A stretch of 63,079 bases of DNA, counting the filler, from Reticulomyxa filosa (taxonomy: Eukaryota; Protista; Foraminifera): the NCBI GenBank assembly GCA_000512085.1. It is 18 parts of 18 records of this genome, joined end to end, with 100 filler letters (N's around TTAATTAATTAA, not from the genome) between each part and the next. Parts side by side here need not be neighbours in the genome. Positions count along the whole stretch, not along the records: positions 32,666 to 38,690 come from ASPP01010613.1; 17 more parts are not named here. One strand, written 5' to 3'. The notes below the pieces were generated by a model. That model made no database searches. It was not told the origin of the DNA and saw nothing but the letters and a program-made list of their open reading frames with translations. Below are positions 32,666 to 38,790 of this stretch, piece after piece. Made by a program: the position numbers and the translations under genes. Position 1 is the stretch's first letter; each line of letters opens with the position of its first letter.

Positions 32666-33982
32666 CCCATTTCCTTCCATTTTTGAGCTGTTCCTGTGGA
32701 ATACATTAGCGCATGAACAACGCCATGTCCTCCTCGCTTTGATGAAATTTCATATTTTCCCTCCATTGCAAATTCAGCATTACTATTCTTTTGTTTTGTT
32801 TTATGTGCATTCTATATTGTTCATCATGATATATTATACATTTTGCTGTAGAAACCTCTTTTTTTTTTTTTTAGAGGGGAGGGGGGGGGGAAAGAGGAAA
32901 AGAAAAGAGAGAAAAGGAAATGCCAAACCGCCAAGTTGACATATTTAGGTTGAAGCATCCATGTGATTTGCTCTTCAGGCATGCCAAAATTAATATGATC
33001 TCTCATGAAGGCTTGCATTTTGTCGATGGTGTGATCGCTTACCATAATCGCCAAAGGAAGTTTGATTTGATCATCACCAGTCGCACGACGTGCCCGAGTT
33101 TGTAAGGCCAAAATCGTGGCTACGTATAATTCCATGAAACTTATTTCGGTGGTTATTTCAGAGGAAATCTCTACTTTTATTCCATCATAACCTAACCGTT
33201 CGTCCAAGTCTCCTATCACCAATACGTAGCCTGTCCTTCCCACCTAGTGCATTATTTGAACCACAAAAAAAATACGCATACAATTTTTCTCTTTTTTTTT
33301 TTTGTAGCTCTTTCTTTTGTTCAATAATAATAATAACAATAAATTGTTTTAACACCAAACTTGTTCCATTCCTTTTGTTTCAAACAAGTGGAATTGTGTG
33401 GAATTGAATTCGATTATTTCTCCTTTGGGAACTAATGGTACATATCCATCGTAAAGATTTATTCCTTTCACCGAATCTTCCAGCACTTTTTTTGCCCTTT
33501 CATAATAATTCTATAATATCGGCCATCATTTCATATTTTCATTTTACAGCAAAGAAGGAGGAAAACAGAGATGACATTGACAACAACAACAACAACAAAA
33601 GACCCCTTTCACTTCCTTCCTTTTTGTAACACGATCCTCCCTCTCCCTTGGACTTATTTTTTTCCTCTCCTTCGCACAAAACTTGCAAACCCCCTGGATA
33701 TTCGCAATTCAATTGCAATACTTGCTTTAACAATTTTTTTTTTACTTCGTCTTCTATTCCAGGATCAGGCCATTTATTCATTACGTGTTGTTGTTCACAG
33801 TAGATTAACACTTTTGCAGCTTCTCGCTCTTCTAGAGTCAATATCTTCCAATTGTCAATTAGTGGTTCACACCCTTTGCAGTATTTTTTTTTTTGTTTCT
33901 TTCTCAAAAGAAGTACGTACACAATAAAAAAAAAAAAAAAAAACCATACCACAGTTCTTTAAATCAAATGGCGTTTTCGGAT
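32666..33982 (-). CDS. UDP-sugar pyrophosphorylase-like domain with degenerate active-site motifs (probably the 3' part of a NAC fusion; 3'-partial)
   Basis: QQHVMNKWPDPG..QLNCEYPGGL, YVLVIGDLDERLGYDGIKV, LPLAIMVSD, FGM..EQIT..LQPK and SKRGGHGVVHALMY align with USP. Confidence 0.85.
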
Positions 33983-34056
33983 CTTTTTTTATTTGCACAT
34001 TTTTTTGTAAAGAAGGAAGATGTCGTAAAGGACACGAGAAAGAAAAAAAGGCAAAC

Positions 34057-34773
34057 CAAAAACGGGTAAATGATTTGGATTAATAGCATTTGTTTCATCC
34101 TTTTTAGTGCCGCCATCAAAGCTTTCACGTACCACTTGTGACAGATCATCTTTATTCGGACCCAATGTATCATTCAATTGTGATGCCAAATCCTTTTGTT
34201 TTTTTTTGTTTTTTTTTGAAATGGAATAAAAAAAAATAAGTGGAAACGAAAGCATAAAGGAAAAAAACTTTAATGTGAGTAATTTTGTCAAAATCTTTTT
34301 GTGGGAATAGTTCATCGCTTTTTTTAATGGAATTCAGACCCGATACTATATATACATCGGGAGTTGTGGCGGCTTGGACTGCACTTTTGATAAGAGTTAG
34401 TTCATTCAAGTACAACAACCACAATGTGACGCAGTGCTCCCCTTCTCTTTTTTTTTTGTATAACCATCATTACCTTTTGGTTTCTTGAAATGGATGACGG
34501 TTCCATCATCTTTGAAAAGATTTACTTCTTCAATTGATGGTAATGTACGAAGATTCAGCTTTTGCAATTCGTTTTGCGGCTCTTTTTCTGGTTTTTCATC
34601 CTCTTTCGACTTTTTTCCACTGATTTGTGTTGTCAAATTTTCAAATGTCTTTTTGAGGCGCTCTTGGATGTTTTCTTTCGATAATTTTGACCAAGTTGAC
34701 ATTATTACAACATAAAAAAAGGGTATTTATGCTGTCACTTGACCACGTTCCTTTTTGAAGTACTGTATTCCAT
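34057..34773 (-). CDS. NAC beta (BTF3/Egd1)-like domain (probably the 5' part of the same gene as the USP-like domain)
   Basis: ELQKLNLRTLPSIEEVNLFKDDGTVIHFKKPK|VQAA....YIVSG is the beta-NAC core; the start codon position is uncertain. Confidence 0.85.
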
Positions 34774-35393
34774 TTGGACTGTGTTTAAATTGACAGTGAT
34801 ATATTATTTTCTACAAGAACAATTTGAGAAAATAAAGCAGAAATATTGAACAATAATAACTGAATCTTAGTATTTTGTTTTGGATATTTTTTGATGAAAA
34901 TCAATAAAACAAAGTGATGTTATAATGTGTATAGATATATCTATTGGTAAGCAGAAAAACTACCTGATTTATTGAATAGACTGTATTAGAGGCGATAGAA
35001 TATGCTTTTTGAAAGACACAAAATCTATTAGAAAGTTATTTAATTAAGAAAAGGAATTTTAGTTTCAGAGTAAGCACTAACGATAAGATGCATTCTTGCA
35101 CTACTACGTTGGCCAAACTATGTCTAAATATGTACTATAAACAACATTGTTCAGTTGTTGGAGTATTCGGACAATTTTATTTTCTCAACAAATTACATCA
35201 TACAAGATGAATCCGGTGCAATTTTCAAAAAATTAATAAACAATTTATATCGAAAAGTACAATATGCACTTCATAATTTCTCGACAAATGAAAACTATTT
35301 GACTATTCAGCATACAATTATTACAAAAGATGAATAACTGTGAGGGATTTCACGTTTCGTTTGCATAGTGCCTATATTTAAGGTTGAGGATCC

Positions 35394-38274
35394 ATGGAGG
35401 CACAATCAGTCTCACACGACAAGCTTGTGTCCCGTTTGCCAAGCAGTCAATGCCAATCTCCTCGTTCCGTTGACAACACAAACTCTTCTTGGCAGATTTA
35501 CTCCGAAAAGTTGACGAATGATGAGCATTGTAAAGTGTCTTTACTTTCACAAAGCAGCAATTCAGATAGATCATCAAATTTTAGTTCGGTCGAAAACCTT
35601 GCAAACGTGAGCGACATCGATCGGTTACAAAAGATGAAAGATGATTGCAAGGAAGTTGAAGTTACCTCTTGTGCTATCAGAGACATAGCATCAGAACCAT
35701 TGGATGTAGAATTGATAGCTGATATTTGTTCTGAAGTTACAAACACCTTACTTTTTTCACCAACTAAAAACCCACTATCATCCTGTTCGGAATTTGAAAA
35801 TAACGTTTCACGTTGTTTGGAGTTTGTTAACACCGAAAACGCCTCAAATAACATGTTGGCAAAACTTAAAAGAGATGAATCACTCCATTTGTCAACATTA
35901 AACATTGTCTCGCCAGCAGATATATTATCCTGCTTTTCAAATCTGACCGAAATCACAACCCAAATTACTACATGTAAAATATCAACGCACATCAAAAAAC
36001 TTTTGAGTAATTGATTTGGTTTGTTTGTTAAAGGTTTAAATGACACTAATCATTTGGTCCTGGACAACAATAAAACATTACAAAACCACAATTCCTCAAG
36101 TAATCTTATTTCTTTTTCAGACAAAGAATTGGATCTCAAACTTCAGGTTGGTTTAAAAAGAAAAAATAGAAACAAGTTTTTGACTGATCTTGTTGGGGCT
36201 TGTCTGAAAAGGTTTGCGAGCCAATATATCAAATGAAAGAAGCCCTCACACTCAAAAAGTGGTGGGATGACGAAAATGATAGGAATTTGAAAAAGCACAA
36301 TCAAAAACATGCAATTGAGTTGCTCACTCAAAAGCAAAAAATTATCATTCATGTATGGATGAAACGATTAAAACGACTTTTTTTCTTTGCCCCTTTCACG
36401 TACACTTTGCTTACGATATTTCTGTCTGTACTGGTCGTAAAAGGCTCGTAAAAACGAAAAAAAAGAATATTTGAAAGAAAATTTAAGATGTGAGCGACAA
36501 CAAAAAGCACTCCAATGTTTGAAAGAAGCACAACACTGTTGGCAAACAGCAAATTTTCCAGTTGAAAATAGAAAACGGAGAAGAAACGATACGTTGGAAT
36601 ATTGGCCTTCAATGATTCACCAATTAGTACTTTCAAGGAATAGTCAGATAAACCAAGATCAAAGGTTGCGTTTATGTAATATAGCTGAAGTTGCTGAAAT
36701 GCAAAGCACTCTAATAAAACAATGGCACAAAAATCAAACAAAAATCATTCCAAACAATGATCAGCAAAAAGCAAACCAAATAACGGCAATAGATATACTT
36801 AATAAGGAATTGATAAATCTCCATAAAGTACACAAACAGGATAACTTAACAGAAATCAGAAATAATCAAATTAAACAACTTACTCAGTTGCAAAAGCAAC
36901 GCCAAAAACAGCTCCAAGGTCCCTTAATTTTTTGTCTTTTCATCTTTTCGGGGCTTAGTACAAAAATTTTGTTTTAATTTTTTTCAAAAGATAATCACTT
37001 ATTGCTAGGTTCAAAAAACGTCCCATTACCAATTACTGCCGCGATACTTGACATATTAGACGCAACGCAAAACACAAAAGTTAGTAGTTTTCATTCTTTG
37101 CACGCAGTTTGTGAGCATGGACGTTTGGCAAACCGAAAGCGTGCACTACAGTTAATAATTGCAAGACATAAAGAATTGAATGACTCTTGCATTCGATTTC
37201 GCAAAAAACAAAGCAAAAAAATCTCTAATTTGGAGCTGATCAATCAAATTGTGGAATTAGAACGGTTGGAGAGGATTGAGCATGGTTTGATGTATTTTCA
37301 TGATATTGAAAAAAAGTGCCATAACTACCTTTCTATCGAAAAGAAAAAACAAAACAAAAAAAGCAAGACCTTGTTGGACGAAAGAGTATTAAACTTGTGG
37401 AAGGAAAGATATTGTCCAAAATCAAACAAAGGCGTAACAAATTTGATCGAGACCCAATCAAAATTACCTGGTATTTAATATGTGTGCTTTTTCTTTTTTG
37501 CAATATAAAAATACTCAACTGTGTTTTATCCAAGTACTTATGTGTAATTATTTTGAATAGGATCTAAGAAAACACCAATAGATTGGAAGTTTATTATCGA
37601 TGTACAAAATTTGAAAAAACGCAATCTGCTAAAAATAATGAAAGAATCCAAATTTTCTCAGCATTTAAAAAAGGAAAAGCTAAAAGAGAGTGTTAAAATT
37701 GTTCAGCAGCCTGAAAGAAAAGTTAGAAAAACGAGCCATTCAGAGTCAGCACCTTTAATCACTAAAACGCTGAAGCGGGGTCAAACAGACAAGAAGTTGG
37801 CAACTCCAAAAGTTTGTAGTCAGTTGTCCAAACTACACCTTTTTTTTTGATGCGTGCCGTATTTGTTATACTCAATTGACATAACATTAAAATCCTTGAC
37901 AGCACATCGTTCAACCAAAGACACTTAAACAACATGAAGATTCACAAAACAAAATTGCACAAGATGTCCAAATTCCGATGATCTTTGGACGACTTTACAG
38001 CGCTTCATTGAAGAGAAAGATAAGGGATGATACAAAAGAATGGATAAAAAATCAATCCAAGGAATGTACTTTTCAGCCAAAAATTTGTAGGTCTGCTAGA
38101 TCGAGCTACAGAAATCACGTACAAGCAATCAAACAACATGCGGAAACATTTAATCGATTGTATTTTGATGCTGAAAACCGCGTCAAAAAGCATAATATGT
38201 GGAAACAAATGGTCGATGCTTATCGACAACAATATTTGGAACAGACTTGTACATTTAAGCCACATGTTAATTAA
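35394..38274 (+). CDS. Large multi-exon hypothetical coiled-coil protein with C-terminal CTFxP repeats
   Basis: A series of co-oriented ORFs; ECTFQPKI and TCTFKPHVN with FxRLY motifs. Confidence 0.55.
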
Positions 38275-38790
38275 TATTTTAGAAAATTTTTTATTTTTTG
38301 ACGTTGTATTTACGAGCGGTTGTTGTTTTCACTCCAAAAATAGTTTCAAGTACTTCACTTTGTCTTGCATAAAACATTTCTCTTTTTCTTGCACACTGAC
38401 CACGAGTTGTTTTCATTATAAGAAATAGTGATACTTTGATTCACAAGAAAAAAAAAATTGACAATCATTTCAAACCTTTCCGAAAACGTTGTATTTTGCA
38501 AAAGATTTGTGTTTGAGTTAGTTGCTGACTTCGACATATGTCAAGATTTAAAATTTATATTCATTTTTTTTAAATAAACACTTAGCTCTTGAGTCATCAT
38601 TCATTACAGTAATACAATACTAAACATCATACAACCCAACCAAGTGGCGCTTTGGCAAAAAAAAGCAAGTAAGACAAAATCAAAAAGAAANNNNNNNNNN
38701 NNNNNNNNNNNNNNNNNNNNNNNNNNNNNNNNNNTTAATTAATTAANNNNNNNNNNNNNNNNNNNNNNNNNNNNNNNNNNNNNNNNNNNN

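Follow-up and report, generated by a model that had tools for sequence, protein, structure and literature searches.

Introduction

β-NAC (BTF3 or Egd1; PF01849), a small and conserved factor of the ribosome, recruits protein-modifying enzymes through its tail, and the tail of α-NAC recruits NatD. The additions carried by yeast Btt1 and by gNAC-β of the Drosophila germline are disordered tails, unlike the folded enzyme that we describe here. Both are duplicated β subunits with altered tails (PMC11565464, PMC9249742), as is the copy studied here. Yeast and worm β-NAC need the RRKxxKK motif to bind ribosomes (PMC6527867), and in the human protein the C-terminal segment 140–149 holds MetAP1 close to the tunnel exit (PMC12716425). 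UDP-sugar pyrophosphorylases (USPs; PF01704) are known as stand-alone monomers of about 67–70 kDa (PMC6329318), and the role of their nucleotide-binding loop (NB-loop) in UTP binding has been described (PMC12584669).

Here we analyse a locus of the foraminiferan Reticulomyxa filosa in which the two families are predicted to be joined. The NAC domain, the helix that follows it and an acidic tail, eroded in this copy, are all present, as in described β-NACs, but whereas those end near residue 160, the fusion bears a whole USP at its C-terminus. The USP part is colinear with the N-terminal and catalytic domains of the Leishmania enzyme (3OGZ/3OH0, 9UML). As in the recruitment of MetAP1, an enzyme is placed just after segment 140–149, but in the fusion the link is covalent. 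MetAP1 and NatD bind non-covalently and modify nascent chains, whereas USP is a small-molecule metabolic enzyme; to our knowledge it has no action on nascent chains.

Both domains are well known, and their combination appears in no paper or database entry among those we searched. Literature searches for a pairing of NAC with USP, or for BTF3 fusions, returned nothing relevant, and a search of the ESM Atlas found no NAC+UDPGP cluster, which is not evidence of absence. As a natural covalent fusion of a β-NAC tail to a metabolic enzyme, present in two distant foraminifera and lacking from rotaliids, the protein allows a test of whether a metabolic enzyme is held at the ribosome exit, and it adds a gain-and-loss character to foraminiferan phylogeny. 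If the fusion is merely a tolerated passenger, its interest is mainly evolutionary.

A predicted β-NAC–USP gene in Reticulomyxa filosa

Within the window, that is the whole stretch of 63,079 nucleotides that was analysed, the gene lies on ASPP01010613.1 (GCA_000512085.1), a record of 6025 bp present in its entirety at positions 32,666–38,690. Our model on the minus strand has eight exons and seven GT-AG introns of 74–172 nt (Table 1). Starting at ATG 34702, it encodes a full-length β-NAC (BTF3), a short linker and a USP, in this order, over 428 codons that contain no stop and no frameshift. The 3′ end is cut at the contig edge (32666), and the catalytic lysine (equivalent to K434 of the Leishmania enzyme, LmUSP) and the C-terminal β-helix domain of the USP lie past it. 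Judged from the sequence, the model is predicted to be spliced in vivo, and a single-gene, fused architecture is very probable.

The junction drawn in the preliminary description proved exact to the nucleotide, with an intron at 34056–33983, a 33-nt exon at 33982–33950 and a second intron at 33949–33874, both introns being GT-AG and in phase 1. The same description extended the gene to 34773, and there it has to be shortened: the ATG at that position meets a stop after 12 codons and would be usable only with an extra, unsupported intron, and homology supports the start at ATG 34702.

NCBI lists three products for the record, namely a 98-aa NAC fragment, the 441-aa RFI_14608 (ETO22583.1; window 34315 to 32719) and an 800-aa protein on the opposite strand. 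The 98-aa product is a read-through of exon 1, for which we found one record, on ASPP01010613.1 itself, and in RFI_14608 poly-T and poly-A stretches of introns are translated. The annotation splits one gene into two models and reads through introns, a clear mis-annotation. The 800-aa gene (window 35394–38274, plus strand) and the fusion are arranged head to head, with 692 nt between the start codons. It gave no Pfam match above cut-off, and a faint leucine-rich-repeat signal is present at 36471–36974.

Table 1. Features of the fused gene model on ASPP01010613.1 (window coordinates).
Feature	Position	Strand	Description and evidence
Exon 1	34474..34702	-	β-NAC N-terminal helix and first part of NAC domain; ATG 34702; PF01849 and BTF3 matches
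RRK loss site	34589..34621	-	About 11 residues gone; alignment with P0251 and P0002–P0004
Exon 2	34269..34378	-	Remainder of NAC domain; aligns to P0251 residues 88–111
Exon 3	34057..34192	-	BTF3 C-terminal helix, eroded acidic tail, start of linker
Intron 3	33983..34056	-	74 nt, GT-AG, phase 1
Exon 4	33950..33982	-	33 nt, symmetric, skippable in frame; linker / USP N-terminal extension
Intron 4	33874..33949	-	76 nt, GT-AG, phase 1
Exon 5	33683..33873	-	USP N-terminal domain; 48% identity to P0251 207–269 (E 3e-20), 77% to RFI_12956
Exon 6	33361..33510	-	More of USP N-terminal domain; flanking intron positions as in RFI_12956
Exon 7	32929..33243	-	First part of USP catalytic domain; PDB USP matches (E 3e-18), PF01704 weak
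Degenerate nucleotide-binding loop IGDLDERLG (family AGGLGERLG)	33190..33216	-	
Exon 8	32666..32787	-	Cut by contig end; KRGGHGVVH at 32713–32739

The β-NAC half keeps its core and lacks the ribosome motif

Databases were queried one exon at a time, and the spliced protein was compared with the sequences thus retrieved. Exon 1 alone matches the NAC family above cut-off (E 9.6e-12). Its PDB matches are BTF3 chains only, and the domain is of the β rather than the α type, as judged by its greater closeness to BTF3 and the lack of a UBA domain. The NAC core stays close to that of P0251, the intact fused homolog described below. By contrast, the RRKxxKK ribosome-binding motif is missing from this copy, and the net charge of the N-terminus is near neutral (+1, versus +13 and +15 in the alignment with P0251 and P0002–P0004). 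The preliminary description had already reported no sight of the N-terminal basic motif in this copy, and the alignment bears this out, with the RRK among the residues deleted. The acidic C-terminal tail with its VPxLV segment is still alignable and is eroded.

A word search with exon 1 over a length window of 42–133 aa did not locate a canonical R. filosa BTF3; its matches were confined to this gene and four BTF3 fragments of ciliate type.

The USP half carries two aspartates in the NB-loop

Exon 7 brings the match to solved USPs, and USP-type N-terminal and catalytic domains are both present. In the NB-loop, the positions of LmUSP A121, G123 and G125 are occupied by I, D and D, and the equivalents of E126, R127 and K134 are kept. 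Among the proteins that we fetched the resulting IGDLDERLG loop is unique to this copy, and VAGGLGERLG is kept in 240 of them. Acidic residues at two positions of a glycine-rich phosphate loop would probably block UTP binding, and the copy is likely to be catalytically dead.

The NB-loop is in line with the earlier suggestion of a catalytically degenerate USP; a second motif gives a mixed picture. The family motif KPHGHGDVH reads KRGGHGVVH in this copy, and we had to reject GGHGVVH as a mark of its decay because R. filosa paralogs with an intact loop (RFI_12956 and RFI_08629) share the H-to-G and D-to-V changes; the P-to-R change is private. Indeed, all three R. filosa USPs have turned this near-invariant motif into K(P/R)GGHGVVH (window 32713–32739; L004:1173–1199; L005), and the active-site changes T351V and L363M are also common to the three. 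These shared replacements hint that the whole R. filosa paralog group may have changed its substrate use.

An intact fused homolog

A profile search with pieces of the R. filosa USPs returned P0251, a BTF3–USP protein of 837 aa that carries both PF01849 and PF01704. It occupies one intronless frame with short flanks on a 2586-nt JGI contig (3300038446, Ga0392334_000610), which resembles a transcript. P0251 is colinear with the R. filosa model over residues 39–428 (38% identity, E 2e-88). Its BTF3 half is complete, with the RRK anchor (as RRRK) and the acidic tail with its VPxLV segment, and aligns to human BTF3 17–162 at E 2e-28, versus only 1e-3 for α-NAC; its USP half has GGLGERLG and KPHGHGDVH intact. 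The two halves have similar codon usage (GC3 0.38–0.42) and no repeat was found at their junction, both of which argue against an assembly chimera. In a single-chain AlphaFold model the USP is confidently predicted from about residue 190 and follows a low-confidence linker (132–185); the NAC part is of low confidence in this model, from which its α-NAC partner is absent.

Searching for proteins with both domains had been proposed together with the fusion, which its first describer did not recognise. P0251, intronless, intact and with the same domain order, supports that fusion and is the only fused homolog found; the NAC domain was absent from all other USP relatives that we fetched. Taken together, a BTF3–USP fusion in foraminifera is apparently real and undescribed. 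By its sequence, the notable object would be the intact fusion, in which an enzyme with complete motifs sits on a BTF3 whose anchor is retained, and the R. filosa gene would be an eroded duplicate. Because the RRK and the intact NB-loop are both gone from it, we file the ASPP01010613.1 protein as a degenerate member of the BTF3–USP fusion type.

USP seems to accept N-terminal partners readily. Other fusions among the matches include SAM–USP (P0018), ROK with ribulose-phosphate epimerase and USP (P0028), and EF-hand–USP (P0232 by Pfam; P0242 of Lotharella looks alike). Two further candidates for long fusions, P0009 and P0010, were rejected as tandem multi-USP polyproteins (1168 aa from JGI and 1454 aa from Cymbomonas), possibly artefacts of assembly or annotation.

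Constraint on the R. filosa copy

The preliminary description had also proposed looking for further USP genes in R. filosa. The family numbers at least three copies, and two paralogs, RFI_12956 and RFI_08629, have an intact NB-loop; exon 7 of the fused copy is 71% identical to the former and 62% to the latter. The contig of RFI_12956 begins six codons past the CEPL motif. Immediately ahead of the exon 6 donor of this paralog (L004:470–480), a homopolymer run lacks one A and the frame shifts; an error of sequencing is the probable cause, and the NCBI model circumvents it.

We propose that in the intact form, as in P0251, a complete β-NAC would pair with α-NAC and dock on the ribosome through the RRK, as its family does, and that its flexible acidic tail would bear a complete, probably active, monomeric and self-folding USP as a covalent passenger. 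The likeliest origin of the fusion is the loss of a stop or spacer between two close genes on the same strand, which would have been tolerated because the halves fold independently. In R. filosa the USP family would then have expanded to its at least three copies, and the ASPP01010613.1 copy, freed from most constraint after duplication, would have shed its ribosome anchor, while the tail motif to which MetAP1 binds in human BTF3 became eroded and the two aspartates entered the glycine-rich UTP-binding loop. Most likely the copy is now catalytically dead and non-anchored, and either still under some weak selection or at an early stage of decay. On balance we read the locus as one gene derived from a foraminiferan BTF3–USP fusion, and the copy as a relaxed duplicate, probably dead and non-anchored. 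That it has lost anchor and activity and is in early decay we hold to be rather probable, and a passenger fusion that is tolerated seems to us more likely than one selected for supplying UDP-sugars locally.

The most serious competitor, which we consider unlikely, is a selected pseudoenzyme, in which the NAC barrel pairs with α-NAC off the ribosome and the dead USP serves as a scaffold or sugar-phosphate sensor, or the protein titrates α-NAC. Loss of both the anchor and the active site would suit such a role, as would a frame that stays open across all 428 codons. Against RFI_12956, the 251 aligned codons contain no stops or frameshifts, and the pairwise dN/dS is 0.17 (0.10–0.27) at a dS of 0.84, a value to which the branch of the paralog can contribute most of the purifying signal. 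In a branch model, omega on the copy is 0.34 versus a background of 0.065 (p 0.001), and it is not separable from 1 (p 0.34). The changes cluster at the NB-loop (residues 293–310) and leave the NAC core near P0251, which favours selection, but conserved structural positions have changed as well (L242V, P252L, D354H, P406R). At near-invariant columns the copy departs 16 times out of 54, compared with 7/54 for RFI_12956 and 5/54 for P0251. The substitutions were polarised by RFI_08629 alone, which is not fully reliable because I305 and V307 may be ancestral states. Moreover, the searches run found no ortholog of the degenerate copy in any other species.

One point weighs against the reading that we favour: the chance of meeting no stop under neutral decay is 0.0007–0.07, for 0.29–0.1 changes per codon. 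Because long neutral decay rarely leaves a frame open, some constraint has acted on the copy and was relaxed or lost only recently. In the preliminary description, the fusion itself stands, but the idea that this copy tethers a pseudoenzyme to the ribosome is weak, since the RRK anchor is lost and the branch dN/dS is indistinguishable from 1.

A more elaborate scenario seems improbable to us. Early-branching foraminifera would hang an active USP on the ribosome via the β-NAC tail, either so that co-translational glycosylation is supplied with UDP-sugars made at the exit tunnel or so that sugar-phosphate status is linked to translation, and R. filosa would add an anchorless, dead copy that regulates NAC through α-NAC.

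Origin of the fusion

In a tree of 27 rows, the USP of P0251 is sister to those of Ammonia, Elphidium and Bolivina and a Logan sequence (100/99), and the three R. filosa USPs group together (100/100) as sister to P0251 plus rotaliids, at a moderate 88/79; outgroups were a selected subset, Nonionella was omitted because it is near-identical to Bolivina, and two R. filosa rows are less than half filled. Constraining the fused USPs (the R. filosa copies and P0251) to a single clade was rejected (AU p 0.001). The rotaliid USPs are stand-alone and none carries a NAC, so either an old fusion was later split or the fusion arose twice, and since the fused USPs are not one clade, rotaliids must have split the gene later if its origin was single. 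One early foraminiferan fusion followed by fission in rotaliids would be the simplest reading.

Two independent fusions, one in the line of Reticulomyxa and one in that of P0251, or a chimeric duplicate that formed recently in R. filosa and has no relation to P0251, would sit well with the rejected clade and with the weak similarity of the linkers (p 0.035). Yet one gain and one loss fit the tree equally, P0251 falls between R. filosa and the rotaliids, and joining the same partners in the same order in two foraminifera is unlikely unless they were already neighbours; we regard this alternative as very improbable.

In the one case in which a rotaliid-type USP comes with DNA, the gene upstream is CLN3, ending 35 nt before the USP start, and NAC was thus rejected as its identity. 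At this locus (L008:1–3312 and L007; Logan SRR24907496 and SRR24907499), CLN3, USP and TMEM43 follow one another on the same strand with spacers of 35 and 54 nt, which reflects either very tight gene packing or read-through transcripts. The USP there has no introns and a GC3 of only 0.08. A metagenome scan gave one stand-alone, ciliate-like USP.

Introns and the start of the USP frame

The introns of the R. filosa model draw support from several sides. Introns 5–7 have identical positions in RFI_12956 and are further supported by colinearity with an intronless USP, the position of intron 1 is common to a ciliate-type BTF3 gene (L002), and intron 2 is supported by continuity with P0251, to which the peptide across the exon 2/3 junction aligns (0/3000 shuffles as good). 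The linking introns 3 and 4 are T-rich at the 5′ and A-rich at the 3′ end, the same composition as in the homology-validated introns 2 and 7 (skew difference 1.56–1.79; coding windows reach at most 0.61). Across them the spliced peptide aligns weakly to P0251 190–206, its USP N-terminal extension (shuffle p 0.035), with a linker score of +3, versus –15 with exon 4 skipped and –18 with the intron read through.

We listed every ATG that reaches the USP frame through up to two GT-AG introns of 50–250 nt and found no such start downstream of the NAC part. The claim that no ATG would allow the USP to start independently therefore needs qualifying: spliceable ATGs exist, and with introns of at least 50 nt all of them fall within NAC exon 2, intron 2 or exon 3, including the ATG at 34315 used by RFI_14608. 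A 3-nt exon at 33947 joined by a 46-nt intron would also give a USP start, and this intron is shorter than any seen. Starting at the first unspliced in-frame ATG, at 33781, would leave out 25 codons on which coding constraint acts (pS 0.67, pN 0.12).

We give scant credence to two adjacent genes, a NAC-like one stopping at 33989 and a USP with its own start roughly as annotated by NCBI: retention of intron 3 would indeed meet a stop (33989–33991) and yield a 186-aa NAC-only product, NCBI has separate 98-aa and 441-aa products, foraminiferan genes on one strand can be spaced by 35–54 nt and rotaliid USPs stand alone, but the NCBI models run through homology-validated introns and cut the NAC domain in two, introns 3 and 4 resemble validated introns, the spliceable starts all lie inside the NAC coding span, the 25 codons ahead of ATG 33781 are constrained, and the intronless P0251 has the same order and frame.

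Introns 1, 5 and 6 of the fused gene are without runs of T or A at their ends. In the other four (34268–34193, 34056–33983, 33949–33874 and 32928–32788), T-runs follow the donor and A-runs precede the acceptor, a pattern opposite to that of a polypyrimidine tract, and the two ends are able to pair.
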